Source: Paraphysomonas bandaiensis | Lineage: Eukaryota; Protista; Chrysophyceae | Length of the DNA: 64,000 nt | Assembly: GCA_965644295.1 (NCBI GenBank) | Contig: CBFFRP010000424.1 | Span: 1 to 64,000 of the forward strand | Reading direction: 5' to 3' | In this document: one piece after another, positions 7,257 to 57,584 of the stretch | Layout: every line of letters starts with the position of its first letter | Numbering within the stretch: the stretch's first letter is position 1 | Notes under the pieces: generated by a model | What the model was told of the DNA's origin: nothing | The model's database searches: none | Seen by the model: only the letters and a program-made list of their open reading frames with translations | Position numbers and translations under genes: made by a program

Positions 7257-7549
7257 TATTAGAATATGGACTGTATCCTAGTATATTCAATGTGGTACTT
7301 GAAGACAATGTACGAGAATACAGTGATGTATGGTGATGTGTAGATGCTGTTATGATATTGAGAAAACTGAAATAGTTTGCTCTTTCAAGATATGTTTAGT
7401 AGCGAAAGGTCTACAGAAGTAGTGATTTATGCATGGCACAAAACGAGCTTGTGTTGTTTAACACAATTTGTGTAAACGATATTAATAAATCTATCTAGTC
7501 TAACAACTTAATCTCTCTTTGATCTAAGTAAAATGAGCATTTCCCAACA
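7257..7549 (+). repeat. 5' LTR of copia element
   Basis: Direct repeat of 12418-12710; TATTAG...CCAACA. Confidence 0.95.
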
Positions 7550-10500
7550 TGGTAGCGAGCGAGGAGGAGAGAAGGAGGATAGAGGAGTAGTTCCTCAGTT
7601 CAACGAGACTAACGTTGAACAATGGATTGAGGACTTCGAGACATTCCTTATGAGGAAGGAACAAAGCGAGGTAGCGGTGGAACTGCCACCTAAGGAGAGC
7701 GACTTCGGGGAGCAGCCACTTACGTTGATGGAGGAGAAGGCGTACAGACAGGCTGTGAAGAGGTATTGGAAGGCGAACGCCATAGCTTATTCTTACTGCA
7801 GGGATGCGGTGCAGCATTCCCCGAAAGCGCTGCGTAAATTCCATCTTACCCACAAAGCGTTCAAGGCAGAAGGGAGTGGTGTAAACAGGTTCAAAACACA
7901 TGTAATGATTGATGAGTTGAAGAAGTGTTTTGCTGGAGGGAAGCAAAATAGGATCAGTGACCTCTTAACTCAATATGGTTCTTTCCGTATGCGTCCGGAG
8001 GAGACGGCGAAGGACTACGTACTACGGTTCGAACTACTGCTGAAGGAACTACAGGAGCAGCAGCAGGATATCTCGGAGGTATCAAAAACAAGTCGACTAC
8101 GAGAAGGCTTGCTCAATGAAGAGTATGCTCAACTGAGAGTTGGATTATACTTGATGGATGATGATGTTAATTATGTAACTGTATCACGTAAGATAGAAGG
8201 CTATGATGATACTATGGCTGGGAAGGAAGCGTTGGAGAAGAAGCGTAAAAGAGTGGAGGAGCTGAACCTGATAGACAGTAAGAAACGATATCGCAGAGAG
8301 AGGGATCATCGTAAGAAGAACAACGGTAAGAAGAAGCCGATGAAGAAGGATACAGAGATTACAGGGCAGCGACCTGGAAGTGCCGAATATACTGGGTGCA
8401 GAAATTGTAAGTCAAAGGAACATCTTGCCATCGATTGTCCAGCATCGAAAAAGAAGTACTCGCAAAGCAAGAGCAAGGCTGTGAGGTTTCAAGATGGAAG
8501 GAAACCAGACAAAAGACTACTTACAGTTGAAAACATCAGGCGTGGAGAGCCAGCGGATTTGTCTGACGAAGACGAAGCAAATATGATCGAGCAACAGGAA
8601 GAGTATCACTTGTCATGTAATGTGTATGAGACGAATATATGCAGTAGTGTGCATGAGGATATTCACTATACATACATTGATACCTGTTGTTCGTCATCAA
8701 TGTTTTTGATAAATGATGTGAATATACTTGATAGTCATATGCACACATCAAAGGTTATTAATGGTTCGAAAAAAGGGTCAGAGATATGCGTCACGAGTGT
8801 AGGTTCCCGTGGAGCATGGAAGAACATTGAGGTATCAAGTCAGATAAATCGGTGTCTTTGTTCTGGACGGAAGTTGAACGATATGGGATATCGATTTACT
8901 GTATGGTATGGTATACAGATATATGACAGAAATACGGATGAGCTGGTGTTGGAGGGACCTATGAAGAATGGAATGACTGCTGTGCCAACACAGCAGTTAT
9001 TGGAGCTTCCAGACGTATCGACATCCAGTGATTCAGAAGTAAATCTCAGTGACCGTACGGGTGAGGATGAACTGGAGCTGTTACATAGGAGAGCGGGTCA
9101 TTTTAACAAGCATGCGTTGGTAGAAGCCCACAAAAGAATGCTAATTATTGGGACTGGACTGAAACGAAAACATCTCTCGAAACGTGTTTCCAAAGAACAG
9201 TGTCTATGTGATGTATGCGCCAGGGCGAAGATCACCAGAGTAAGTTTTCGGACAAAGGATGAGGACTCCGTTCGTCCAAATTTCTCGGCCGATATAGCAG
9301 TATACTTAAATTGTCCAGCTCGAGGAGGGGAAATATATGTGCTCAAACTAACACACCATGCCAGTCGGATGTTCTGGTCGGAAGGGCTTGTTCATAGGAC
9401 TGGGTCATCGGTACTGCAGGTTTTCAAGAAGATTTTTGAAGGAGATGTGAAAAGGTACAAATTAGAAATGCATCATTACCATGCAGATGGAGCAGGGGAG
9501 CTAATATGTGATGAGCTGCGACAATATCTTAGGTCACAGGGTTGCTATCAACATACGTGGAGCTCTACGGACTCTCCTGAGATGAACGCGATTGAGGAGC
9601 GGAAATTCAGGACCTGTGGTGAGATGACATTAGCGATGCTGATTCAGTCAGGATTGCCTTCACAGTTTTGGCTAGATGCCTACATGGCAGCCAGGTACAT
9701 ATTAATTCGATTGCCTACAAAGACAGCGAAGGGGTATATGTCCCCTCTTGAATTTTTGACTGGTGAGGCTCCCAACCTGAAATATCTCAGAGTATGGGGG
9801 TGTCGTGCGTATGTCCTCACTACAAAGGCGGATCGACGGAAAGACTGGGACGACAAGGCCCTTATCGGATATCTGATAGGATATTCAGATGAAAAGGTAG
9901 GATATGATGTATATCTACCTGCGACTGATAGGGTCGTCACGTCGGTACATGTATTAACTGATGAGTCCATACCGTCACGCTCGGAGAGCTATTTCGCTGA
10001 GATAGATGCTCTTCGAGTGAAGGAGGCCGAGAGACCGAAAATTGTGTCTGACTATGCGGGCTTAGAAGGTACATATCATATTGATGATGAGGATGGTCTT
10101 CTCTACAAGACCACGAGAGTAGTAGAACGAAAGGGGGTAATAGTAGCCTATCGATCTCTGGTAACTGCAGGTCGGAAGCATATCGAGCACCGGGTGCCGA
10201 TTCACGTCGAGGACGTAGTGCGAATGACTGCAGAAACTCCCGGGAATACCGGATATATAGGAAAGGGGGACGCCCTGAGTACTATGCCAGCCAGGGTGCT
10301 GGACCAGGGAAGACCTGGAGGGTTACAGGAGAGTCCTGACCCAACCTGTCAGGAGACAGCTGTGAGGTTGCAGACCTCTGAAGACTATGAGTCTGGGGTT
10401 GTGAGCGGGGCTCCTCCCACAACGCACGATGTGCGTGCTCAGGATGAGCAAGGTACGGGTTCTTATATACCTCGTCGACCGATTGAACTAGATGGTGATG

Positions 10501-12244
10501 GTCGGGTCCGACGCAAACGGCTGCAGCGGAGACTGGCAAACGCGTCAGTTTTAGGAGAGATTAATATGGTTGAAGAACCGGATGCGCATAATATTGATCT
10601 TAACCATGCAGAGACAGAAGATATCAAGATACCAAATTCATATGCCGAGGCAGAGAGATCTCCACAGTATCAACAATAGAGAAAAGCTCGAATGGTGGAG
10701 AAGACATCATTGCTGAAAAGACGTGTCTTGAAGATCGTGAAAATTCCAAGCGGAGTGAAATTAGTTAGAGCGAAATATGTGCATACGGTGAAGCGAGACA
10801 TACTAGGGAATATAGTAAAGTACAAGGCTCGGCTAGTGGCATTAGGAAATCTCCAAGAGAAGAAGGAGGAGGAGCCGTCCACTTTCGCTCCAGTGGTTAA
10901 GGGTATAACCATTAGACTAGTGTTAGCGATTGCGTTTATGTTACAGATGCATGTGCATCAATTAGATGTATCATCCGCATTTTGCTATGCAGATCTGGAG
11001 GATGACGTGTATATGGCACCTCCACCAGATGAGGAATTACTAGCTGGATGGTGTTTTCAACTAATCAAGGCATTGTATGGACTGCGATCTTCACCGCGAC
11101 AGTGGAATAAACATATTGACAAGTTTATTAAATCATTGCATTTTACTCCGTGTATTTTGGATACGTGTTTGTATATGCGATGGAGTAACGGAAAACTGCA
11201 TTTATTATTGATATATGTTGATGATATCATAATTGCATCCGCTGATCTGACTTACTTGGAAAGCGTAAAGCGTAGGTTCTGTGAAACATTCGAGATGCAT
11301 GATCTGGGAGTGTGTAAGCGATTTCTGAACATCAGGATAACCAGAGGAGAAAATTGGTATATGTTAGATCAATCTGAGTATGCTAAGAATATTATCAAGA
11401 AATTCAGCTCAGTTATGGGAAAGAGTAGTAAGAATAAGGAGGCCCCACTACCTACTAATGTTCAGGATCTGTTGGCAGAGGAACGTGAACTTACGGAGGA
11501 GCAGAAGCAGTGGGTTGACTCATTTCCGTATCGGCAAATTATTGGAGCAGTGTTGTATCTAGCAATGCATACTAGACCTGATCTGGCTTATGCAGTGGGG
11601 TTATTGTCTCGATTTAGTAGTTGTCCGACATATGCATCGTGCAAACTGGCGATTCACTTATTGAAATATTTGCGTGGAACAATTGATGAGGGCATCAGAT
11701 TCAGTGGGAGTGAGTTCGACTTACATGTGTTCAGTGATTCAGATTGGGCTGGTGATAGACTGACTCGGCGATCGACAACAGGATACATTGTGTTCTTATG
11801 TGCAGGCGCATTGGCCTGGCAGTCTAAACTACAGACCACAGTTGCAACTTCGAGCATGGAATCTGAATATATGGCGGAGTATGCGGCTATGCAAGAACTG
11901 GTGTGGCTTCGGGGGTGTTCAAGGAGCTCGGGCTCTTAGTTGCGAAGCCGACTCCATTCTTTATGGATAGCAAGAGTGCGAAAGATCTCTCCGAGAATCC
12001 TGTGTATCATAAGAGGTCGAAGCATATAGACATCAAGTATCACTGGGTGAGAGAGCATGTAAATGGAAAATTTCCTACGGCAAAGTTGATTCATGTGTCG
12101 ACGGATGATATGGCGGCTGATATTTTCACGAAGGCATTGTCAACGAAACTTTTCAGTCGTCATGAGAAAACTATTACCGGGGTTAAGAGAAGTGTGTCAA
12201 CCAGAGTTGAGGAGCAGCAGAAGAAGCGACCCCGAAGAGGTTAA
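7533..12244 (+). pseudogene. Copia gag-pol with in-frame TAG (10677-10679) and a frameshift in the G run at 11911-11915
   Basis: Zn knuckle CRNCKSKEHLAIDC; protease YIDTCCS; integrase HRRAGH..CDVC, SAD/HADG/EER; RT YKARLVALG, LDVSSAF, YVDD; RNase H SDSDWAG, MDSKSA, ADIFTK. Confidence 0.93.
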
Positions 12245-13147: not shown

Positions 13148-13998
13148 TTATTTCTTTTTGTCGCCCAGCAATGATTCAACCCAACCTGTATGGAAATGTG
13201 AATACCTATTATGAAGTGGTTCAGCTTTGAAGTTGTCACTATTTAAATAAGCTGCAACTGAAGGCAGCGCTCGAAACCTCCTTACAAAATCCACAAGAAT
13301 GGGGTATGAATTCAAGCAATTTCTATCAAATGCCAAATGCTGGTCCAGATATTCGTATAAAATAAAGTCGACATAGCAAATGCGTGAACCCAAAACCCAC
13401 GGATTGTTTGCAGATAACACCGAGCTATACATGGAAAGAAAATACGGCAACCTGTCACGAAGGTAAGATAGGCTCAACTCTTTAAACTTGCGCGCTCTAC
13501 TATCGTTGACGCACTGAAATTCACCTAAAATATGAACGTCATCCGTTGGGTCCTGCCATGGTGCGCAGCAGTAAGTAACATCAAAGAACTCATTCATCCA
13601 ATCTCTCAGGCCTTCCATAAGCATATGTGCACGGGCACGATCCGCAGCAGTATCACCATCCAGGCCATGTTTCTCAGCTAAATATCGAAGGATGGCATTG
13701 GTTTGCGTCAGAACCACCACACCATCCTTATAATACGGCAAATTCGGAACCGACAGCCCAATATGCTCTTTCTCTGTATACCATTCGCTTTTATCGTAAT
13801 CTGGCGGCGGACCGACTTGATATCTCTTATCTGTGAAGCCTTCTCCCGCATAATGCAGCAATAAGCGGATAGGTTCACATAAGGCTCTTGTGTTCCTAAC
13901 ATAGATAGCATACACATATGAAATAGACCTCAGATAGATGCATGAACTATACGACTACAACAGGAGTATCTCACTTACCAATATCCAAGCTCTGACAT
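13148..13998 (-). CDS. Glutathione S-transferase, mu-like; intron 13896-13978
   Basis: Spliced N-terminus MSELGYW-NTRAL; mu-loop GPPPDYDKSEW; PNLPYY; LTQTNAILRYLA; YVDFILYEYLD. Confidence 0.92.
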
Positions 13999-18163: not shown

Positions 18164-18766
18164 TGTGAGTTTGTATAGCAAGCTTCAATACTAACTGTAT
18201 ATGCGGGAGAGCTATTGTAAAGGTTTATGCCTCATTATCGACAAAATGAGCGTGACAAGTGGGTTCCCGTGACCTGTAGAAAAGCGGAGAGTGTATGTCT
18301 CGAGGTTATTGAAGATGACGCAAGCAAGCACTATGCCTATTAGTATTGGAGGGGAGAAAAGCATTTGAAATTGCGCAGTGAAAATTCAGTCCGAGTACGT
18401 CGTTGATTCATGTGCTGATTTACAGCATGAAACCGTGTTTGAAATGGAAAAAGAAGACCATGCAGGTGAGGTAGTGTTTGATATGCTCGACTTACTGAGC
18501 AATGCTCTCAGTCGTGGTAAAAAGAGAAATGCATCAAAAAAGCTCCAGAGACTCCCGGCTAGTGTCAGGTAATAAGTAGTGGTACTAGAGACTAGAGTAG
18601 TAGAGTGTGTAGCTTTTCTGTTACATGCGCAAGCAATAATAAGAACTAGATGGTACTGTAATGAACTATAAGATTAGGTGAAATTTATATATGGTAAAGA
18701 TTTGTCGTTAATTTGCAGTGCTAATACTATGAAATTGGGATAAAATACCATCATATATATCTGCTC

Positions 18767-21223
18767 TTAATACAGTGATATACCGGTATCACGGACAACG
18801 AAACTGCGAAAATTATCAAATTGGGATAAAATACCAGCATCTTGAAGATGAGAGACTACCAATTGGTCCGTATGGGAAGCATCAATTAAGTGGGAGTCGT
18901 CTCGCATATGTCGGGGCAATACCAATTTTGATACGGTAATATTTTCAACTTTTTGTAGGTAGCGATCACGTAATACATCAGTATTTAACTCTGCGGGCGA
19001 TCGGGCTTCATCAACAATCTGAATGTTATGCACAATATTTTTCTCGCTAATGCTGATACAGAGATCCAACACAAAGCCTGATACAATGGTGTTACGCGAT
19101 ACAACAGCGCTGTGGTATTCCTTGCAAATTTTCTCCTCTATGCTGCGTTCGAATACCTTCATTTGTTCACAGTTGTCTACAGTATCTGATGCTACCAGTT
19201 CTTCTAGTCTAAGAATTATCTCGGTGGCCCGATCAGATAAACTCAACGGCAAGAGTGTATTGTTTGTCTGCATATAGTGCTTAAGTAGCACTAAATTACT
19301 CAGCAAATTCAGTGTGCTATTAGAGTGGTTCCCGCTATTTCTGGCGTCAAGAGCAGTCTCTGCCCCTTCCAATAAACAGTTCAGTAACCCATTCAGGAGG
19401 TCCACAGCATCACTTGGTGTATCATCAGTGACACGCGATAACAGACAATTGATACCAAACAAACCATTACCAGCTCCACTGGTTGACATACCACTCGAGC
19501 ATTTTAATCGATTCAACAGCAAAGTAAGGGCCTGTTGCACTTCTTCCTGCGCTATATCCATGCTTTGAAGTCCATACACAGCATTCCCAATGGTATGACC
19601 ATTCACCGGCAAGTCACAAGAGGAGAGAAGATTTACCAAGTACTGGAGCATATCGCGTACTTCAACGTTTGAGCTGCACATTCCTTGCATCGCATACATA
19701 CCTGCATATATGTGCGCTGGTTCCATATCGGGTAACAACCCAGACTTTGCCCGCCTCAGTAATGATCGTAAAGCAGATCTGACTACTCGATGGTCCGAAG
19801 ACATACGTTGTAGTCCCAGCAAAGCATTTCCAAGACCAAGTGAACTCAGTGGTTCCGTCCGACTTCGTAAATGTGTATTCACGTTTCTACATAACGATGA
19901 GAGCACGGCTGCAACTTCCTCATGGTCAGCATACATGTGCTGCAGTGCGAAGAAACTGTTACCAATAGCCTGGGCACTCATTGGCTCGTCACATGTACGA
20001 ATCTTCTCCGCGAGTTTTGCGAGTACGTCGCGGACGTCGGCATAATGACTACTCATTCGCTTCATGCCATACAGCGCTATGCTGAACTCCTGCGGAGAGA
20101 GTGCATCGGTACACCCCGACAGCTTACTAGCAATTGCTCTCAGCATTTCCCGAACCTCCGGTACATCTGCCGTCATGTTTTGCATACCATACAGAGCATT
20201 ACCAACAGCTTGTGCATCTATCTCCGCACGAGACTGGGCAACCTTTACTGCCAGGACAGCAAGGAGACCCCGCACAGCTTCATTTGAGCTGCTCATGTTC
20301 CGCAACCCGTACAAAGCAATGCCAACTTCTTGAGCATTGAGTATCTTGCGGTAAAATTTCACTTTTCGGGTGATGGTGCGCAATACCTCACATACTTCCT
20401 CGTGATCAGAGCTCATGAGCTGAAGCCCATATAGTGTATTCCCAATTTCACGAGAAGAGAGGTCATATGGGCACGTAGCAGCTTTGCGGCTTAGAGCTCG
20501 CAAGAGCCTTTTGACTTCTTCATGGGAAGCTGTCATACGACGAAGACCAAAAAATGCACTTGCGACTCCCTGAGCATTCAATTCCTCCGAGCAGGTTTCG
20601 ATCTTCGATGCCAACGCGGCCACGACTGCTCGGACTTCGACATGCTCACTACTGCAGGATTTGAGGCCGTAACATGCATTGCTTACCTCTTGGGCCTTCA
20701 TCTCATCCTCGCATTGAACTATATGATCAGCTAGAACAGCCAAGAGTTGTCTCACTTCAACAAATTCACTACTCATATTCTGTAGTCCGTATAAACTGTT
20801 CCCAATACCGCGAGCATCCAACCTTGCCTTTGATGATTTAATTTTTTTAGTGATGGCATCCACTAAATTTAAGACCGCCGGGTCAGAACTCGTATATAAA
20901 CGAAGACCATAGAGTATCTTGGAGGTGTTAAGTACTCCGAATTTCTTATTCTGAGCTCCGAGCCGGTCAGATATAGCAGCCATATGACTCCCATCCAGCG
21001 GCCATCTTTTCTTACAGGAGTAAAACACAAGCTCAGCGATGTTGTGAGTGGTCATTGTAGAGATATGATTGGCAATGTAGAGGTCCATGTCCTTGCGTTC
21101 AGTGTCCTTGGAGTTAAACAGCTCTCGTACAGTCATAGAGGACAAACACCTCATAGAGATGGGCATGACGAGAGACAGGGGCCTCATGGATAACAGGGAG
21201 AGGGAGGAACATGACCGGATCAT
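18767..21223 (-). CDS. 818-aa helical tandem-repeat protein (~13 x 40 aa) with presequence-like N-terminus and RAP-like C-terminus; putative organellar RNA-binding protein
   Basis: Intronless ORF; repeat consensus xAQxVGNALYGLQxMSSxHxEVRxLLxxLAxKIxxCxxxL; first ~30 aa S/R/L-rich with no acidic residues; FERSIEE..GFVLDL..RDRYLQ tail. Confidence 0.85.
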   Translation of the reverse strand: MIRSCSSLSLLSMRPLSLVMPISMRCLSSMTVRELFNSKDTERKDMDLYIANHISTMTTHNIAELVFYSCKKRWPLDGSHMAAISDRLGAQNKKFGVLNTSKILYGLRLYTSSDPAVLNLVDAITKKIKSSKARLDARGIGNSLYGLQNMSSEFVEVRQLLAVLADHIVQCEDEMKAQEVSNACYGLKSCSSEHVEVRAVVAALASKIETCSEELNAQGVASAFFGLRRMTASHEEVKRLLRALSRKAATCPYDLSSREIGNTLYGLQLMSSDHEEVCEVLRTITRKVKFYRKILNAQEVGIALYGLRNMSSSNEAVRGLLAVLAVKVAQSRAEIDAQAVGNALYGMQNMTADVPEVREMLRAIASKLSGCTDALSPQEFSIALYGMKRMSSHYADVRDVLAKLAEKIRTCDEPMSAQAIGNSFFALQHMYADHEEVAAVLSSLCRNVNTHLRSRTEPLSSLGLGNALLGLQRMSSDHRVVRSALRSLLRRAKSGLLPDMEPAHIYAGMYAMQGMCSSNVEVRDMLQYLVNLLSSCDLPVNGHTIGNAVYGLQSMDIAQEEVQQALTLLLNRLKCSSGMSTSGAGNGLFGINCLLSRVTDDTPSDAVDLLNGLLNCLLEGAETALDARNSGNHSNSTLNLLSNLVLLKHYMQTNNTLLPLSLSDRATEIILRLEELVASDTVDNCEQMKVFERSIEEKICKEYHSAVVSRNTIVSGFVLDLCISISEKNIVHNIQIVDEARSPAELNTDVLRDRYLQKVENITVSKLVLPRHMRDDSHLIDASHTDQLVVSHLQDAGILSQFDNFRSFVVRDTGISLY

Positions 21224-21638
21224 GCTATGCTATGCTATGCTATCCTTCTATGGCTATATCACTATATGACTGCATGGTACTGGATGTACATGTCGCAGTG
21301 TAAGTATGGTATGGTACAGCCAAGTGGTACAGCATACAGCAGCGTGGTGGAGTGACACGTACTTCTCGAGCCTAGAATGTACACATATACTTTAGCGCAG
21401 TACAGCATATGTGTACTTGAATGGTGTACCATTCCAGAATCATCATACTGGACTACACTAATGTATACTATGTATTCTACCGCGAATAAGCCAGCTCCTG
21501 GAGAGAATACTTCCATGTGATTGGCTGTAGAGGGGCTGTGTGGTTTCTGGTGTTAAGCATCTCACAATTAAATCCTTTTAACACAACACACAGACGTAGA
21601 GAGCATATCTAACCCTTGTGAGCGTATCTCAACCGGTC

Positions 21639-23255
21639 ATGGAAGTATCTGGAGAAGATTTAAATCCTTACAAAGTGTTTGAGAAGCGTGTGAAGGCTCA
21701 TAAGCATGTGTGTGAGGCTGTGTGCGGGTCACAGACAGTCATCGACTTATCCTCACCGGAAGACTATTCATGTGTTACAGAGACAGCTCGCATTAATTTT
21801 ATGGGCTCTGAACGATCTGTGTATGGGTTCAAAGATCACGATGGACTGTATGTTATCACTGGCGCTCTTCCCGTATGGGCTCAACTTGAAGCCGCTCACT
21901 TTGCTCTCTCGCAGTGTCCTGAGTACCCAAATTCCACTAACCTTGGACCTAGTGAGGTATATGACTAGCTACATTCTATTCAATATCATCAGCGGGATAT
22001 ATTCAGGCGACAGGGATATGGGACAAAAACAAGTCTATCTTGGATTCAGGTAAAAAGTGGAAGGAGCAAATGGTGGACCTACGCACTTCTGAATTGGGGC
22101 ATCTACGGTGGTCAGCTCTAGGTACAACCTTTATAGATTTTGTTCGCATGAATAAAATGCTTTGTATAATTTTGTGTAGTTTTACTAAGTTTTGGATAGG
22201 CTATCAGTACGAGTGGACGTCGCGAACGTACCCCCAGACAAGTCCTGCGGAAGAAAGTAGTGATTCTCATGAAGTGCCCCAGAGATTTCCACCGGCTTTA
22301 TCACACTTGATTAAGGAGCTTGTTAATGCTCTGCCGATGTCTGGCATGCTTTTAGAGCCTGAGGCTGCTATTGTGAATTACTATGTGGTAGGTTTGATGT
22401 AAAATTTTCACCTCGCCACTCTTATATTCGCCTTGCCGCACTGTGCGTACAGCCGGGGAAGATTATGGGAGGACATGTAGATAATGCTGAGTTGACTCAT
22501 GAACACCCTGTAGTATCCCTGTCCATTGGGCGACCTTGTGCCTTCCTTGTTGGTAAGTATTAATACTTTATGCAGTAGTGATGCCGTAAATTGTGTTTCG
22601 ATATCTGTGGATCACTTGTACATGTGTGTAGTGGCTGTGTGTAGCAGCTCTTATGATTACTCATTATCAATAATGTCCATTTTGTAGCACAGTGCAGTGT
22701 TGTATTGTATGGTGTAAGGTGTTGTTGGTATGATTCTGTAAAAAGTGCTGCAATCGCACAGGTGGCACAACCAAGGACGAGACCCCTATTTCGATTCTTC
22801 TTAGATCTGGGGATTGTGTAATTCTGTCCGGTGGATCACGCTTGCGTTATCATGGCGTGGGTCGCGTTTTTGACTGTCCGTTCGCTCCTCGGGTAAGAAA
22901 AGATCCTGGATGCAATTCAGAGTGCATGGACATTTGCACTTCCATATGTGGTCCTGAGAGCTTTGAACATATGCGCACTGATAAAACCTACTCCAAAATT
23001 AATGTTCATAGATATCTCGCGGGCATGAGGTGTCGTGATCTGGTGCTTCAGGCAGAAAAATTCGAAGATAGTCACTTATACAATGAATGCAAGGAGCAGT
23101 CCGATCCTCATCATAATGTTAGCCGGTGCACAGATTGCGGAGTAGATTTAGTGGACAGCAGGGAGGTTGAAAGAGTTGTAAAATTTTTGGAGTTCTCAAG
23201 AATTAATATTAATGTTAGACAAGTATTTCCATCTGGACACGATACCAAGAAGTGA
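21639..23255 (+). CDS. ALKBH1: AlkB homolog 1-like Fe(II)/2OG dioxygenase, multi-exon
   Basis: LRWSALG|YQYEWTSR, PEAAIVNYY, MGGHVD (HxD), VVSLSIG, LRSGD, YHGV, RININVRQV across about four GT-AG introns; exon limits approximate. Confidence 0.88.
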
Positions 23256-23560: not shown

Positions 23561-26500
23561 CGAGACACTTACTACCCCCAGGCGGCGACATCCCAGGAGC
23601 CCCTCCATCCATGCTCACACATACCCCTTCCCCTACAACACGGACTACGACGTGCACTATGTACTAAAGTCAAACCAGAAACGGCGTACCTTCTTGAAAA
23701 GCACTAGAGAAGGACATCACACACGACGAATTCTTCTCCACCCTGCACTCCATCTCCTTCAACCGGGCCCCTGGGCCCTCCATGGTCTCATCCAACATGG
23801 TCAAATCCTGGCCTCCGACCATACAACAGGAAGCATTCATCCTCATCAAGTCGCTCTGGAAACACAAACACGTGCCTACTTGGTGGCGAGACAGAGTTAT
23901 GACCCCCATACTTAAGAAACCAGGAGAACCCTCCCTTTCCAACCTTCGACCAATCGGTCTGCTCGAAATATCACGGAAAATTTTGACAAGAATAATCTCT
24001 CACAGGATACTCACAGTCTGGGAGAAACAGAAGGAACTACATCCGTCCCAACATGGATATCGCTGGAGGAATGGCACTGACACGGCTATCATACGGGTAC
24101 TAGCTGCCTCAGAGGCAGCCAGACGTAACAATGCCCAACACATATGCACGCTCTGGGACTTCAAAAAGGGATTCGACTCCATAACGCCTAATCTAATGAG
24201 ACTAGCATGGGCACGGCTTGGAGTTCCCGATGCTGTGGTTGAATGGTTTGGCGACTTCGACGCTGGGGGGCCTCACATTCCCATGGAGGCCTTTCATGGC
24301 GAATAACATTGAGTCACGTTCGCTGGCAGACCTTTTAGCTACCGACGGACACTTCCTTGCACAGTTCGTACTAGGATTTGAGGCCGCGAGAGGTATCACA
24401 CAGGGGGGCACCGAATCCACGTGTGCCTGGGTTGCGCTACACGATATACTTCTTACATGGTTAGACCTAGATTTTAAAGCGATCTGCACCTTTTTCCCTC
24501 GACTACGGGAAAATCTCTCTCAGGTCAACCAAACCGGACACATCACCTTATACGACTGGAAATGGAGTCCCCAAACTGTACCAATATAAACGACTCATGA
24601 CACCTACAGACACAGACTCATACAATTGGTGTACACAATACCTAAAAGCAGCAGGCACACACCTGGAGATCAAGCACGCCTCAGCGGGTTGCAAAGTCAT
24701 GGTTATTGAGACCCAAATCATCCCCACTCTACTTTACAAGGCCACCAAGGCTTCATGGCCCCTATTATATCATAAGGAAATCGATTCCACCTGCGCAACT
24801 CTCTACAGGAAAGCACTGAGTCTAAGTCCTGGATACCCCACGGAATTGATTTACCTCTCCCTCAAGCATAATGGCCTTGGAATGAAACGCTTCTCAGATT
24901 CCGCTCAAGAACAAAAATGGGGCTCCCTACAGCGCGCCATATCCCTAGGTGGGGATGCAGGTGACGCAGCGCACCTTCTCCTATCACAGACAATTGCTCC
25001 GTACCCAAACTACCACCACTTTGCCTTAAGCCTACGGGAATGGGGTACTGAGGTCGGTCTCACGCTCCAACAACCCGACATTCCGGAACCTCAAGATACC
25101 CACACCCTGACCAACATTATCCGCACATTAGGGCTGGATGATGTAAACGCTGATACCAATCAGGCAATCTTCACAGACGGCTCATATACGCCTACAGCCC
25201 TCTCCCCGCGCCGCATTACGCATGTACACCCACGCACAAGATGGACACATCATGGAGGAGCGGCGGCCGTCTGGCTCCCCCCGGAGGATAAATGGAAGAA
25301 CGGTACCATAAAAATACTGCGATTAGAGACACCCTTCAGCGACGTACCTGGACTTGGCCCGTATGCATACGAACTCATGGGGGCTGCAATGGCGCTTATA
25401 CTATCTGCGAGGCTCCCTGCACACATACCGATAAACACGGACTGTAAGGCCGACGCACTCTCTCCCAGACGTCGGGCACTAGGACATCGAGCCAAAGGTG
25501 TACTGCTCGAAAGCATATTGCAGCAAATAACGAATGTACAAGGAACGTAGCCTGGGTACGATCACACCCCGAACGACGTACCTCGGATGAATCTGAATGG
25601 ACATACGAAGACAAAGGAATTTACATTGTGCAGCCGTGCTGCAAATTGTTCTTCAACAGTTACGTAAGAGAGGTGGGAAAAGGTAGTGTAACGCTGTGGC
25701 GTTCAACTATACTCCTGTGAGTGAGATTTTGGTGTCTATCTACTGGTGAGTGCTATGGCTATGGTTGGATACTTATATGGGCTACGCTAGGAAGAGTGAG
25801 ACCTCTTGCTGGTGATATATATTGTGTATATTATTATATGTATGCTTGCATGTACACTACACTATGCCTTACACTGCATGACATCATTGTATTGATACTG
25901 TATTGTATGCATTTACACTTATTACTACATCACCCACATAACTCACACCACACCACACATATATGACATAAATTATACATCTTATATATCATTGCATACA
26001 TACTACACTTCACACTTATAACACTGTATGCTGTGTTGGTACTGATTCTTCTCTAGCTGCAGATAGAAGGAATTAGATATCAATATAGTGTATTCACATT
26101 CATCTATACCTTCTTCTATCTCTATATGTATGTGTATTACCATCTATATCCATCATCACACTCTTGACACCTTGCATACTATATGGTATAGTGTACACGT
26201 GCTTGTATAAGATCTAAGTCTTGTCATAAGCGCGGTCTACATGTATACATGACATGAATATGACGTATGTATGATATATGTACACATTGTATCACCTGAG
26301 GGTCCATTTATCTTGTTATGAGGCCATACTCTCTGTGTGGTCTTCATATTCCTGTGGAGCGCAGTGGACTCTAACTTCTCGTTTTCATGATGTTTGGAGC
26401 CGTGGCTTGCGTCAGACGTCTGTCATTATGGACTTGACTAGTGTGCCAAGTGTCAACGTCTATCTCTTACTGGTTATGGAGCGTTGGCATGTATCTGCAA

Positions 26501-34600: not shown

Positions 34601-35232
34601 AGAAATGTTAGATCAAACAACATACCACAGCAAATTAACAGTGGTAAACGAAAAAGAGATACAAAGACCAGAAAAGGATATATATATATGTGTGTGTGTT
34701 CGCTCCCATCACTGCATATTAGAGTATCGTCAGCCAGTATGTCGGCACAGATCTTGGTATTGCTAATCATATGGGTCGTAAACACACAATCATCACTACA
34801 AAACATAGACCAAGGATATATATATATGTGTGTGTTCGCTCCCATCACTGCATATTAGAGTATCGTCAGCCAGTATGTCGGCACAGATCTTGGTATTGCT
34901 AATCATTTGGGATCGTAAATACACAATCATCACTACAAAACATAGACCAAGGATATATATATGTGTGTGTGTGTTCGCTCCCATCACTGCATATTAGAGT
35001 ATCGTCAGCCAGTATGTCGGCACAGATCTTGGTATTGCTAATCATATGGGTCGTAAACACACAATCATCACTACAAAACATAGACCAAGGATATATATAT
35101 ATATATGTGTGTGTGTTCGCTCCCATCACTGCATATTAGAGTATCGTCAGCCAGTATGTCGGCACAGATCTTGGTATTGCTAATCATATGGGTCGTAAAC
35201 ACACAATCATCACTACAAAACATAGACCAAGG

Positions 35233-35264
<32 letters not shown>

Positions 35265-35937
35265 TCGCTCCCATCACTGCATATTAGAGTATCGTCAGCC
35301 AGTATGTCGGCACAGATCTTGGTATTGCTAATCATATGGGTCGTAAACACACAATCATCACTACAAAACATAGACCAAGGATATATATATGTGTGTGTGT
35401 GTTCGCTCCCATCACTGCATATTAGAGTATCGTCAGCCAGTATGTCGGCACAGATCTTGGTATTGCTAATCATATGGGATCGTAAACACACAATCATCAC
35501 TACAAAACATAGACCAAGGATATATATATATATGTGTGTGTGTTCGCTCCCATCACTGCATATTAGAGTATCGTCAGCCAGTATGTCGGCACAGATCTTG
35601 GTATTGCTAATCATATGGGTCGTAAACACACAATCATCACTACAAAACATAGACCAAGGATATATATATGTGTGTGTGTGTTCGCTCCCATCACTGCATA
35701 TTAGAGTATCGTCAGCCAGTATGTCGGCACAGATCTTGGTATTGCTAATCATATGGGATCGTAAACACACAATCATCACTACAAAACATAGACCAAGGAT
35801 ATATATATATATGTGTGTGTTCGCTCCCATCACTGCATATTAGAGTATCGTCAGCCAGTATGTCGGCACAGATCTTGGTATTGCTAATCATATGGGATCG
35901 TAAACACACAATCATCACTACAAAACATAGACCAAGG

Positions 35938-35969
<32 letters not shown>

Positions 35970-38900
35970 TCGCTCCCATCACTGCATATTAGAGTATCGT
36001 CAGCCAGTATGTCGGCACAGATCTTGGTATTGCTAATCATATGGGTCGTAAACACACAATCATCACTACAAAACATAGACCAAGGATATATATATGTGTG
36101 TGTGTGTTCGCTCCCATCACTGCATATTAGAGTATCGTCAGCCAGTATGTCGGCACAGATCTTGGTATTGCTAATCATATGGGATCGTAAACACACAATC
36201 ATCACTACAAAACATAGACCAAGGATATATATATATATGTGTGTGTGTTCGCTCCCATCACTGCATATTAGAGTATCGTCAGCCAGTATGTCGGCACAGA
36301 TCTTGGTATTGCTAATCATATGGGTCGTAAACACACAATCATCACTACAAAACATAGACCAAGGATATATATATGTGTGTGTGTGTTCGCTCCCATCACT
36401 GCATATTAGAGTATCGTCAGCCAGTATGTCGGCACAGATCTTGGTATTGCTAATCATATGGGATCGTAAACACACAATCATCACTACAAAACATAGACCA
36501 AGGATATATATATATATGTGTGTGTTCGCTCCCATCACTGCATATTAGAGTATCGTCAGCCAGTATGTCGGCACAGATCTTGGTATTGCTAATCATATGG
36601 GATCGTAAACACACAATCATCACTACAAAACATAGACCAAGGATATATATATATTTATGTGTGTGTGTTCGCTCCCATCACTGCATATTAGAGTATCGTC
36701 AGCCAGTATGTCGGCACAGATCTTGGTATTGCTAATCATATGGGTCGTAAACACACAATCATCACTACAAAACATAGACCAAGGATATATATATATATGT
36801 GTGTGTTCGCTCCCATCACTGCATATTAGAGTATCGTCAGCCAGTATGTCGGCACAGATCTTGGTATTGCTAATCATATGGGATCGTAAACACACAATCA
36901 TCATTACAAAACATAGACCAAGGATATATATATGTCAATTCACAAGTTACCATATCGATTTCGAAGCGGTCATCTTCAGATCGGAACATAGCTTCCTCGT
37001 ACTACAGAATCGAAAATAGTCGTTATAAACAGAGGGAAGTATTAATTTTCAAAGGGACCTGGTTTCTTCGCATATGTTTGAATGAATAGCTTTCCTCTGA
37101 TCCTATCGGAATACTAACCCACTGCAACACATTGTTAGAATGTATATGAGGATTATGCCCAATTACACCATCCACAACTAACACAAAACGCAATGAAAAG
37201 TACCTCGTCATTAAGAACAACAGATTCCTTTTGCCCTTCTCTACCAGAGCATATTGGTTTCGCATAATCTGCAAATGCACACCAGAATCAGAATACAGCC
37301 ATACTTTGTACAGTATCTGACCAGATGGAAGAATTCTGTACGACGGCGTGCAACGGCGGCATTGACTGAAGTCAATCTCAGTAAGCGGAATAGAAAACCA
37401 CATGTCCTGCCAGCACAAACACTGCAGTCAAATATAGAAGGGCTAAAGCAGACTTCTGCAGGGGCGGCCATATACAACAAAAAGTAGCACAGCTAGATTA
37501 TGATATCGCTTCACCTGTTGAGATGAGTCGTATGCAGATCGCGCTGATATGAGGGCCCTGAAAGTATGACTTAGCACTTATTACAATGAAAGCTAAAATA
37601 TGTACTTAAACTCCTCAAGAAGTTCAGAATTTCCAGGGCCAAACAATTCCTGTCAAACATATTACATTCGATACAGAAATATCTATTTGTAGCGCGACAG
37701 TAAAGCAAAATACACCTATCCATGGAGATTATATGATGTCGTACCTGCACTAGAAGAAACATATCCCGCCGAGATATGGCATCGTGGCTATATAGGTCAA
37801 GGCATTTTACAAACTCTGACCATGCATCGCGGGACGAATTCGTCAGAAGATCTTTCACCTAGTACGCATAAGTTAGTATTGGCATCAATAATACACGATG
37901 GTGCCAGCCACACTATAGCCAAACAAATATCATACCTGATCAAAAAATTTACGCTCGGTGCTGATGCTGTGGTAAGTGGACCCAATACTTCCAGTCGGTA
38001 CGGGCACACTTGAGCTCTGTGCTGCGGTCGCTGCCTCTTGACTGTTAACCTGGGAGGCAGCAGCGTCGGCATTTGCTGCCGCGCGCTTGCGAGATTTACG
38101 ACTGGTCGTACCCGCTTGTCCCCCTGCACCCTGTAGTTCGTATTATACATAATCTACCACCTGTGGCGCCTAAAGCTGCTAATATAAACACCGTACCTGT
38201 TGAGCTGATGCTTTATTAACTTTTGACTCTTTGTCTGACCCAGCAGCAGAACTAATCGGGTAAACAATATCACGTAACAATACTTCGAAAGGAAGAATAG
38301 CTCACCGCGCAGTCTCCTTATCTGCCCCCTTCCGTTTTCCCTGGAAATATAATTACAACCATGCTCCAAATGAACTTGGATGTGCGAACTCACCGAAGCA
38401 GGAGCGGCAGCGGCCTTCGATCGTCTAGTTTCTGCTTCTCTGACTGCGCGGCTCAGTCGCTCTTTCGCCTGCACATCCAATGTCATATAATATCCACAGG
38501 ACAAGTGATAAACGAGTGGTACAATGCACAGTAATTTAAAATAAGTAGTAGGACATTGTAGAGTGGCATTGCCTGTTCTTGCACGGCATCGGGAAGGAAA
38601 AAGGTAAATTCCATCAAGAGGTCCGGGTGCTCCGCAAATAGCTGTGATACCTGTGCATATATACCGAACAATCTATGAGCAATGAAACCTGTAACGGTGC
38701 AGCGCATAATGCAGACATGAATACTGATGCATAGGCAAGCAAAATAAATAAATAATTGACACCTGCTCCAGTACATCCTTAATCCCCTTCTGTTCACGTT
38801 GATATGTGTGCAAGATTTTCAAAAATGATCTGAGTTGTAAATGTTAGTAACTTGGCTGGCCCCAGATCAAACTTCACATACTTATAAGTTTCAGGCTCAT

Positions 38901-42126: not shown

Positions 42127-42350
42127 AAATGTATGTATGTACGTATGTATGTATGTATGTATGTATGTATGTATGTAGGTAGGTAGGTAGGTAGGTAGGT
42201 AGGTATGTATGTATGTATGTACTATGTATGTATGTATGTATGTATGTATGTATGTATGTATGTATGTATGTATGTATGTATGTATGTATGTATGTATGTA
42301 TGTATGTATGTATGTATGTATGTATGTATGTATGTATGTATGTATGTATG

Positions 42351-42381
<31 letters not shown>

Positions 42382-42948
42382 GTATGTATGTATGTATGTA
42401 TGTATGTATGTATGTATGTATGTATGTATGTATGTATGTATGTATGTATGTATGTATGTATGTATGTATGTATGTATGTATGTAGGTAGGTAGGTAGGTA
42501 GGTAGGTAGGTAGGTAGGTAGGTAGGTAGGTAGGTAGGTAGGTAGGTATGTATGTACTATGTATGTATGTATGTATGTATGTATGTATGTATGTATGTAT
42601 GTATGTATGTATGTATGTATGTATGTATGTATGTATGTATGTATGTATGTATGTATGTATGTATGTATGTATGTATGTATGTATGTATGTATGTATGTAT
42701 GTATGTATGTATGTATGTATGTATGTATGTATGTATGTATGTTTGTATGTATGTATGTATGTATGTATGTATGTATGTATGTATGTATGTATGTATGTAT
42801 GTATGTGTGTAGGTAGGTAGGTAGGTAGGTAGGTAGGTAGGTAGGTAGGTAGGTAGGTAGGTATGTATGTATGTATGTATGTATGTATGTACTGTAGGTA
42901 TGTACTACGTGTCCAAGTGTTGTGTTATGGGGTATGTATGTATGTATG
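42127..42948. repeat. Compound (TATG)n/(TAGG)n microsatellite
   Basis: Read directly; block structure repeated at ~339-bp offset. Confidence 0.98.
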
Positions 42949-55100: not shown

Positions 55101-57584
55101 CTTCAACAGTTGTCGTGTGAGACCGGATATCGAACATAGCTCCTCCGTGAAGAACAAGAGCATTAGCGATAGCCAATTTCGTTTGGGCCAAGTCTTGCTC
55201 TCGGGTACCTAAATGAAAACATCATTCAAGCATTGCAAGGGATTTACGACTTACCTGGACAGGATGAAATGTCCTTCAGAGCAGCTCCAGCCATATCAAA
55301 CAAACTATTCTTAGTATTCGATCGTATTGCCACAATTGCCCGCACAATTGTCTGGGAGAGAACAATGGGAAGGAGACTAATTGGTGTCAGGCGAGCGAGT
55401 TCTGTGACCAGTTTCAGAGCGACACCCTTCTTTTCATGAGAACCTCCAACAGGTAGCAAGTGTCCGTCCACAAAGTCCACAAAAGCAATCAGCAAACCCT
55501 CCTGGGCAACTGAAAGACTACTTAGCCTGCAGTACACATATTAGAACTTGAACAAATATTGCATATACAATGAATCTCGCCAAATGAACAAGTGGCTCAG
55601 AATTCAAGTTTCTTTTAAGACGCTCATTATAACTTAATGATAAATGTCACGGAAAATTTTATCATCATAGCCACCGTCAAACATATAAAAACACAACACA
55701 ATAGTAATTAAAATACGAGAACATATTTCTGATTGGCTCAGCATTCAAGTTTCTTTTAAGACGCTCATTATAACTTAATGATAAATGTCACGGAAAGTTA
55801 TAGCATCATAGCCAATTATAATACATGTGAGTAACATTATCACTGTAAGCTCACCTTTCACGTGGTAGCTGCCGCGTACTGTCCGAGCCGAAAATAGCTA
55901 TCAGAATGCAGTACCAAGCGCGATGAATCTGCAGAGAAAATGAGAAAGCGAATCTTTACAACATAGCTAGTCGTCAGTAGTTGGATTAATATTGTGACAT
56001 ATCATATAGCCTACGGCTAGTCATATGACGCGCATAATCTTGTCCTCATTCGACTGTACAAGGCACTCAACATAAATTATAATGCTATATAGACACACAA
56101 CATATACCCTAGTCAGTCGTCAGTAGTTGGATTAATATTGTGACATATCATATAGCCTACGGCTAGTCATATGACGCGCATAATCTTGTCCTCATTCGAC
56201 TGCACAAGGCACTCAACATACATTACAATGCTATATAGACACACAACATGAACCCTAGTCAGTCGTCAGTAGTTGGATTAATATTGTGACATATCATATA
56301 GCCTACGGCTAGTCATATGACGCGCATAATCTTGTCCTCATTCGACTGCACAAGGCACTCAACATACATTATAATGCTATATAGACACACAACATGTACC
56401 CTAATCAGTCGTCAGTAGTTGGATTAATATTGTGACATATCATATAGCCTACGGCTAGTCATATGACGCGCATAATCTTGTCCTCATTCGACTGCACAAG
56501 GTATTCAACATACATTATAATACTATACATACGCACAGCATGTACCCTAATCAGTCGTCAGTAGTTGGATTAATATTGTGACATATCATATAGCCTACGG
56601 CTAGTCATATGACGCGCATAATCTTGTCCTCATTCGACTGCACAAGGTACTCAAAATACAACAAGTACACTTCCATGTAAAAGAGTCGCACGAGTATTCG
56701 TGAAGTATACCTTAGGGAATCCACTACAGGCAGCCAACAGGGTGGGACCAAGCGCTGGTATATTAGACGAGGAGAGTATTTGCTCGTCAGGAGTGAGGGC
56801 GGCATAGACATCTGCCACTGCGTCATTCCCCTCGACCCTTAAATCATGGGCATGCTTCTGGAGTCCGGAGAGCAGAACCACTTCATGGGCTGTAAGATCA
56901 CCTGGCTCCACTGATCTCTCCACAATAAGGGATAGTTTACTGACAGCACTCTGGGCGATGGAGATATCTTCAGCTGGAAGGACAGGGAGAAGGAATAAAA
57001 TTGCCTCTGAAACCACCTCGCGAATCCAAGCCTTTCGCTTATGCAGCTCAATGAGGCGGTCGAGAGTGTGTAGTGCAATTGAAGGTGCCGCTTGCAGCCG
57101 ACCTGAGCGAATTAACGCCAGATAACCAAACAGGCGACCGAACATAACGTCCCTCTCCTCTGAACCTTTCATACCGCCAGTTGACTAAAGGTAATATTAG
57201 TATAGGCATGAGTTCCTTCCAGATACAAACCTTAGTGGTGTCATCCAGCATAGACACGACCTTATTTAGATCGATGACAGTGAAGGTACATAACAGCTGA
57301 CACAAACAAGCGGAGAATCCCTGTCTAGCGGAGTCTCTCGAGGAGGACAGGCCTCGAATCAACCGCTTCAGAGTGTACTCACAGTCAGTGGACAGCATGC
57401 CCTCATCTATTTTCTTCTGAGTTTCAGTGATGTACTTTATGATCATAGTAGCAGACATACAGCGACGTGTCATATCATCAGCTGTAAAGATATCACCTCA
57501 CATCATACACACATCACAACCATTACCTGCAAGGTCCCAAAACCAATTCATAAACTTACTGCTCTTTTCACCCGTGTCGGTCAT
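52139..57584 (-). CDS. POL5: Pol5 / MYBBP1A (DNA polymerase phi family) nucleolar protein, multi-exon
   Basis: FMNWFWDLA, YTLKRLIRGLSSSRDSARQGF, EERDVMFGRLFG, FPK|IHRAW, SHEKK, acidic tract with ADAALA..IQMRK, RAIDILE, K-rich tail. Confidence 0.9.
55593..55813. repeat. Intronic direct repeat, 2 copies at 141-bp offset
   Basis: TGGCTCAG.ATTCAAGTTTCTTTTAAGACGCTC...CGGAAA at 55593 and 55734. Confidence 0.9.
55969..56654. repeat. Intronic tandem array, ~4.7 units of 146 bp
   Basis: AGTCGTCAGTAGTTGG at 55969, 56115, 56261, 56407, 56553; within intron 55929-56710. Confidence 0.97.

Follow-up and report, generated by a model that had tools for sequence, protein, structure and literature searches.

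An array of 13 regular helical repeats with a C-terminal RAP-like domain in Paraphysomonas bandaiensis, a putative branch of the OPR/HPR/FASTK-RAP superfamily

RESULTS

A single-exon gene encoding a repeat protein

The window analysed here is a stretch of 64 000 nt from the chrysophyte Paraphysomonas bandaiensis, a golden alga without colour (contig CBFFRP010000424.1, positions 1–64 000, assembly GCA_965644295.1), to which all coordinates refer. On its minus strand lies a gene for a protein of 818 aa in which a tandem array of helix pairs precedes a domain of the RAP type:

18678–21264, minus strand: transcribed unit, single exon (2587-nt contig colinear at 99.9% identity)
18767–21223, minus strand: coding sequence, 818 aa (ORF and MMETSP transcript ORF)
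21137–21223, minus strand: presequence-like N-terminus, about aa 1–29 (composition; low pLDDT at aa 1–20)
20939–21097, minus strand: capping helices on the N-terminal side, aa 43–95, degenerate hairpins preceding the array (DSSP on the model)
19370–20938, minus strand: 13 helix-pair repeats, aa 96–618 (autocorrelation, helix-A scan, AlphaFold2/DSSP, NCBIfam XopAD/SKWP); units start at 20938, 20818, 20698, 20578, 20458, 20338, 20218, 20098, 19978, 19846, 19723, 19603 and 19486
19169–19369, minus strand: helical linker, aa 619–685, occupying the place of the FAST-like helices (AlphaFold2/DSSP; structural alignment)
18899–19168, minus strand: RAP/Vsr-like domain (PD-(D/E)XK fold), aa 686–775 (profile, DSSP, structural matches)
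19004–19066, minus strand: degenerate catalytic motif, with D720 kept and E-x-D-G-P-x-H of the family replaced by Q735-I-V-D-E-A-R

This is a genuine, complete gene of a single exon, and it is expressed. A 2587-nt JGI contig (L085), which was taken as a transcript assembly, follows the locus without gaps and with three mismatches, in agreement with the intronless structure given in a preliminary description of this DNA. The MMETSP transcript ORF differs from the genomic ORF in one residue, and an in-frame stop stands immediately 5′ of the ATG. The neighbouring genes had been called intron-rich: the upstream gene is indeed split, but a GST gene at 13148–13915 is single-exon and matches a complete transcript ORF. 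An origin of the array as an artefact or DNA tandem repeat was rejected, as TRF makes no call at the array and a transcript exists; bacterial contamination of the contig was rejected in view of the eukaryotic neighbours and a Copia-type element.

The split gene (21618–22402, plus strand) is arranged head-to-head about 400 bp upstream of the repeat gene; its product matches 2OG-Fe(II) oxygenases weakly (E 0.02) and presumably carries motifs similar to those of ALKBH1. The Copia-type retrotransposon ORFs (SH3_retrovirus, RVT_2) occupy two consecutive frames at 7533–11939 on the plus strand, and an RVT_1 fragment is found at 23782–24306. The window further holds tandem arrays at 34674–36933 (139-bp unit, 16 copies) and 55969–56660 (146-bp unit, 4.7 copies) and an ATGT microsatellite of 194 copies at 42129–42904.

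Thirteen helix pairs of nearly constant length

The 13 repeats start at aa 96, 136, 176, 216, 256, 296, 336, 376, 416, 460, 501, 541 and 580, exactly as had been read from the translation, with eight spacings of 40 aa followed by 44, 41, 40 and 39. BLOSUM autocorrelation of the protein was +0.83 at lag 40, with further peaks at 80 and 120, and negative at every other lag between 30 and 45; shuffled sequences (n = 200) reached −0.48 at best. Mean identity between units is 33%, and units 1 and 13 are weak. AlphaFold2 predicts an alpha-solenoid (mean pLDDT 92, pTM 0.88) with two helices per unit, as proposed from the repeat consensus, helix A at about positions 2–10 and helix B at about 20–35 of the unit. 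Along the model a low-confidence N-terminus is followed by the capping helices, the solenoid, the linker helices and the C-terminal domain. The protein has a net charge of −5.

The residues listed in the preliminary description for unit positions 3–4 and 6–7 are those of the translation. All four positions had been taken as variable, which is the case for position 4; positions 3, 6 and 7 are mostly conserved family-wide (Q in 62%, G in 55% and N in 63%, respectively), and strong variability in helix A across the family is confined to positions 1 and 4.

A degenerate RAP/Vsr-like domain at the C-terminus

The extent first assigned to the protein covered the repeats and omitted the C-terminal domain. 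Residues 686–775 match the C-terminal profile of the family (E 4.4e-11), and DSSP on the model gives the topology helix-3 strands-helix-strand. Linker and domain together align to the Toxoplasma mitoribosome chain 9g6k_Li (Z 9.8, 177 of 198 residues); further matches are 3hrl (Z 9.4) and 3r3p (Z 8.1), the latter being the template on which FASTK RAP domains were modelled, with a Neisseria endonuclease-like protein as an earlier model (PMC5449608). In Pfam searches PF08373 (RAP) did not match the query above its cut-off, and no RAP, FAST_1 or repeat model reached the cut-off in the query or the family domains; DUF559 matched 10 of 73 family C-terminal domains. A Pfam RAP search of the genome was silent, as were its positive controls.

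The published RAP core ends in acidic-x-acidic-G-P-x-H (PMC8190603). In the query D720 is the positional equivalent of the essential first Asp, and Q735, V737 and D738 replace the family's E (92%), D (64%) and G (82%); the His is absent. The motif is intact in 9 of 21 paralog ORFs examined. Judged by these residues, the domain is probably a catalytically inactive pseudo-nuclease. Because the catalytic motif is mostly lost, the protein most likely binds and stabilizes or assembles RNA instead of cutting it.

N-terminus and organellar setting

The N-terminus had been described as presequence-like, and it is rich in Arg, Ser and Leu, carries no acidic residue and lacks a hydrophobic core of the signal-peptide kind. 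In 18 of 22 family ORFs no more than one acidic residue occurs within the first 30 aa, compared with 14% of internal windows, and none of the 22 N-termini has a strong hydrophobic core; this composition fits mitochondrial presequences. In the 62.6-Mb assembly we found cox1 (contig C669) and no psbA or psbD. There are only three second subunits of RNA polymerase, all of them intron-split, so that a plastid-type rpoB is likewise absent from the assembly. The mitochondrion is thus the only DNA-bearing organelle detected, and loss of the plastid genome has been reported for Paraphysomonas (PMC7511666). Import of the protein into mitochondria is very likely on these grounds.

Relation to known repeat families

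The preliminary description suggested a new class of modular organellar RNA-binding protein. An alpha-solenoid related to OPR and HPR proteins is upheld by homology and, as regards organelle and RNA, by inference; novelty as a class is not, since the repeat is homologous to SKWP, OPR units of 38–40 aa have been described before (PMC8635915, PMC6212722), and repeats plus RAP is the standard layout. The query shares with the OPR/HPR/FASTK-RAP superfamily the tandem two-helix units of 37–40 aa, the repeat homology and the C-terminal RAP/Vsr-like fold, and we place it there as an unannotated branch, not as an OPR protein in the strict sense. Strict OPR motifs are PPPEW or LWALA (PMC8635915), neither of which occurs in the family consensus.

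NCBIfam XopAD/SKWP matches the query over aa 94–536 (E 7.8e-22; 76 bits against a family cut-off of 2000) and 54 of 69 family members, and PRK09169 matches 33 of 69; DUF1601 (three members) and HEAT (2 of 69) match weakly. With Pfam the query gives only spurious matches below cut-off, and none to PPR, TPR, ARM or HEAT models at E up to 10. In an intact XopAD, one of the XopAD/RipS effectors, helix A of the SKWP repeats lies in register with that of the family (shared Q3, N7, A8, L9 and L12), but the SKWP period is 42 aa instead of 40, S-K-W-P stands where the 40-aa branch has Q-x-M-S, and helix B gives no convincing alignment (hhalign probability 1%). Oberleitner et al. (PMC7729196) had already placed SKWP and Orientia repeats beside OPR-RAP proteins.

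OPR-RAP proteins (the Chlamydomonas NCL family, AtRAP and Paulinella OPR) resemble the branch in having two-helix units in tandem, a RAP-like domain at the C-terminus, expansion within particular lineages and, in helix A, a Gln and an Asn at a spacing of four residues; their targeting peptide has a putative counterpart in the presequence-like N-terminus of the branch. In contrast to them, the 40-aa branch lacks PPPEW/LWALA, has nearly invariant Gly11 and Met15, keeps its period much more strictly (74% of spacings are exactly 40) and carries a RAP-like domain that Pfam RAP and FAST_1 miss; published OPR sequences were compared with the family by eye.

Among solved structures, the family profile matches Tetrahymena mL104 (E 3e-4) and RESC4/8/6 (E 0.004–0.02), and phmmer of the query against PDB sequences gave no match. 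Designed 40-aa helical repeats are matched too (DHR14, E 5e-5), so weak profile matches partly reflect the period. The best seven VIA structural matches have Z 12.5–13.8, the next row 10.2, and comprise Toxoplasma, Chlamydomonas and Polytomella mitoribosome chains, RESC6 and a Polytomella ATP synthase chain. A Z of about 13 is borderline for helical repeats, yet the set of matches to the predicted model is coherent, and Atlas neighbours in features and shape are RAP/FAST_1/RESC6, XopAD and DUF1601 clusters. HPR, FASTK, trypanosome RESC6/8 and RAP-containing mitoribosomal proteins are the best structural neighbours, a solenoid followed by an often non-catalytic Vsr-like domain, but their units are of 37 aa or irregular, with identities of 9–13% in the structural alignments; the HPR-type period of 37 aa accounts for one of 1461 family spacings. 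PPR proteins offer a functional parallel only, as solenoids with a position that varies among repeats and is fixed among orthologs, and differ in their 35-aa unit and the lack of a PPR Pfam match to the query. PPR10 was found by Foldseek (E 1e-5) and is absent from the VIA top 50, and separate true PPR genes are present in the Paraphysomonas genome.

The family in Paraphysomonas and other eukaryotes

A scan of the genome found about 31 places with the repeat, which is a lower bound; 19 places match the C-terminal profile. Family ORFs examined carry about 7–28 units. One divergent paralog pair on contig C90 (70197–77524) shares 1.6 kb at 97.6% identity while having 13 and 28 repeats, so that repeat number changes quickly, and the pair appears to reflect a recent duplication or conversion with altered repeat number. 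Outside the genome, the profile search returned 1052 clusters at E 1e-30 or better. A helix-A scan gave 40 aa for 1077 of 1461 spacings; the period proposed in the preliminary description thus predominates without being exclusive (39 aa in 131, 41 in 70 and 38 in 25).

The named relatives include the chrysophyte Chromulina nebulosa. A conserved ortholog group of P0002, P0003, P0010 and about 28 others, among them Chromulina, has 13–15 repeats and a degenerate RAP domain, beyond which a long tail extends; the Paraphysomonas genome showed no clear ortholog of this group. A Karlodinium veneficum transcriptome protein (P0090) shows the same repeat at a 39-aa period, as do several metagenomic proteins. 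In a quick, unrooted tree the query forms a long branch without a close database ortholog. The viral collection contained no relatives, and the papers searched gave no account of the 40-aa branch. Heterokonts have been reported to have few RAP proteins (PMC8190603); the 40-aa branch occurs in chrysophytes.

Bacterial members

A search of GTDB yielded 25 bacterial loci with the repeat, in Legionella gresilensis and other Legionellales, Rickettsiales, Midichloriaceae, Marinamargulisbacteria, Caenarcanales, Cupriavidus and further taxa. Misbinning may affect some of the short MAG contigs; two loci lie amid clearly bacterial genes, and some come from isolates. The same helix A occurs in bacterial relatives at periods of 36, 38, 39 and 40 aa. 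Since it is common to periods 36–40, the 40-aa length alone does not define the group, and a new class defined by 40 aa was rejected for the same reason.

In eight bacterial members near-identical repeats precede a terminal Smr-like domain in which D-L-H, G and H are invariant (L066:183–1751 from L. gresilensis, L062, L063, L065, L074, L077, L078 and L082) and which Pfam Smr matches below cut-off in five (E 2e-4 to 0.08); they couple repeats to an Smr-like domain as PPR-SMR proteins do, and the papers searched gave no account of such proteins. Two Marinamargulisbacteria proteins (L060:5455–7365 and L061:5350–7629) combine 40-aa repeats with an intact RAP-like domain and, in the quick, unrooted tree, cluster with a small number of eukaryotic or metagenomic members, making them candidates for gene transfer. 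That the repeat is fused to nuclease-like folds of two unrelated kinds, RAP/Vsr and Smr, lends indirect support to nucleic-acid binding. A proteobacterial MAG protein (L051:8001–12263, equal to L064:5569–9831) has about 14 repeats followed by an OTU protease domain at its C-terminus, so the repeat also occurs apart from nucleases. The gene of this protein adjoins ligA/zipA/smc and an ARM-ankyrin gene, and the protein resembles an effector from a host-associated bacterium. Units within bacterial arrays are 46–89% identical, with variation peaking at positions 1 and 4.

A candidate specificity position in helix A

We compared 27 putative orthologs over 13 aligned units. Diversity between units was 3.0 bits at position 1 and 2.6 bits at position 4, compared with 0.6 and 0.5 bits for the same unit across the orthologs, and variable helix-B positions drift (2.0–2.5 bits within orthologous units). 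A second, independent set comprised 25 close pairs (147 unit pairs); here too, position 4 was the most conserved of the variable positions (kappa 0.68; others 0.33–0.51). Position 1 reached a kappa of 0.46, and as its strong signal in the 27 orthologs was not replicated here, it was rejected as an established code position. Both tests used relatives, not the query copy, because the query has no close ortholog and sits on a long branch.

The strongest covariation among 1001 non-redundant units involves the pairs 36–38, 3–7, 1–4 and 3–4; in bacterial arrays covariation is inflated by duplicated units. Ser/Thr-x-x-Glu is an ordinary helix capping box, and the covariation of positions 1 and 4 could alternatively reflect helix N-capping. 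Orthologs in general keep helix A well conserved as a whole, which tempers the signal at position 4. With this limit, the strongest candidate for a specificity residue is position 4, its pattern being as expected of one, and positions 3, 6 and 7 look more like scaffold. The decodable code envisaged in the preliminary description thus keeps a candidate at position 4, perhaps also 1, but not at positions 3–4 plus 6–7.

DISCUSSION

We consider it fairly probable that the protein is a mitochondrial solenoid for single-stranded RNA with a site of about 12 nt and no working nuclease, which protects or chaperones a transcript end or an rRNA segment. Binding of RNA as such is likely, judging by the relatives and the nuclease fusions; for recognition of one base per repeat we would put the chances slightly below even. 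The nucleus-encoded protein would be imported into the mitochondrion, where the 13 helix pairs would form the solenoid with helix A of the units lining the RNA-binding groove. Conserved Q3, N7 and Y10 would make general RNA contacts, and position 4, perhaps with position 1, would set the base preference of each unit, giving the site of about 12 nt. Mostly without its catalytic motif, the RAP domain would leave a mitochondrial mRNA end or rRNA segment bound and protected or chaperoned, not cut; the nine paralogs with an intact motif would be candidate cutters.

Mitoribosome chains and the Polytomella ATP synthase chain head the structural matches, several of which align over both the repeats and the RAP-like domain, and a lost catalytic motif would suit a role in the mitoribosome or some other mitochondrial complex, as a structural subunit or an assembly factor that binds folded rRNA or protein without a per-repeat code. 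This seems unlikely to us, as fast evolution on a long branch without a close ortholog, and about 31 paralogs with 8–28 repeats and a recent duplication, are unlike core subunits. The protein could instead act as a sequence-specific endoribonuclease with a rearranged active site, in the manner of FASTKD5 or the proposed NCL role: D720 is kept, D738 could replace a lost acid, and active sites are highly variable in the superfamily (PMC12687428). However, E735, D737 and G738 of the family and the His are all altered in the query, and FASTKD4 keeps the Asp, yet showed no ribonuclease activity in vitro, which makes this quite improbable.

Slightly more improbable still is a solenoid serving as a protein-binding scaffold, a role that could be expected for the repeats of the OTU-fused bacterial protein or of SKWP effectors. 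Nuclease-like folds form the C-terminus of ten bacterial and of most eukaryotic members, the closest solved folds are RNA-associated and the ARM, HEAT and TPR Pfam models miss the query; these points outweigh the OTU fusion in one bacterial member, the slightly negative net charge and the weak generic helical-repeat matches. DNA could also be the ligand, in a mitochondrial protein using its repeats like mTERF or TALE, given that Vsr and Smr folds also act on DNA and that near-identical bacterial arrays with two variable positions are organized like TALE arrays. We regard this as very unlikely: characterized OPR, HPR and FASTK relatives act on RNA, HPR proteins were reported to bind RNA and not DNA (PMC12691811), and neither TALE nor mTERF is among the structural matches listed.

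The favoured reading of a mitochondrial RNA-binding solenoid would imply a hidden expansion of about 31 organellar regulators, missed by Pfam, in a lineage considered to have few RAP proteins. Much more speculatively, and with the odds rather against it, the 40-aa branch as a whole might read RNA at one base per repeat through a code at positions 4 and 1, operating in protist mitochondria, with near-identical arrays of protist-associated bacteria fused to Smr or RAP domains acting as sequence-specific RNases. If true, this would offer a scaffold for design and direct access to the OPR code, as yet unsolved. The recognition code of OPR and HPR proteins is not established, partly because the known repeats are degenerate (PMC12691811). 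As the branch is regular and bacterial units are up to 89% identical with variation at two positions, a code would be directly testable with consensus repeats, and near-identical bacterial versions fused to nucleases would be a good system for how such repeats read RNA. Recurring residue pairs at positions 4/1 are D/A, N/E, E/H and R/E.
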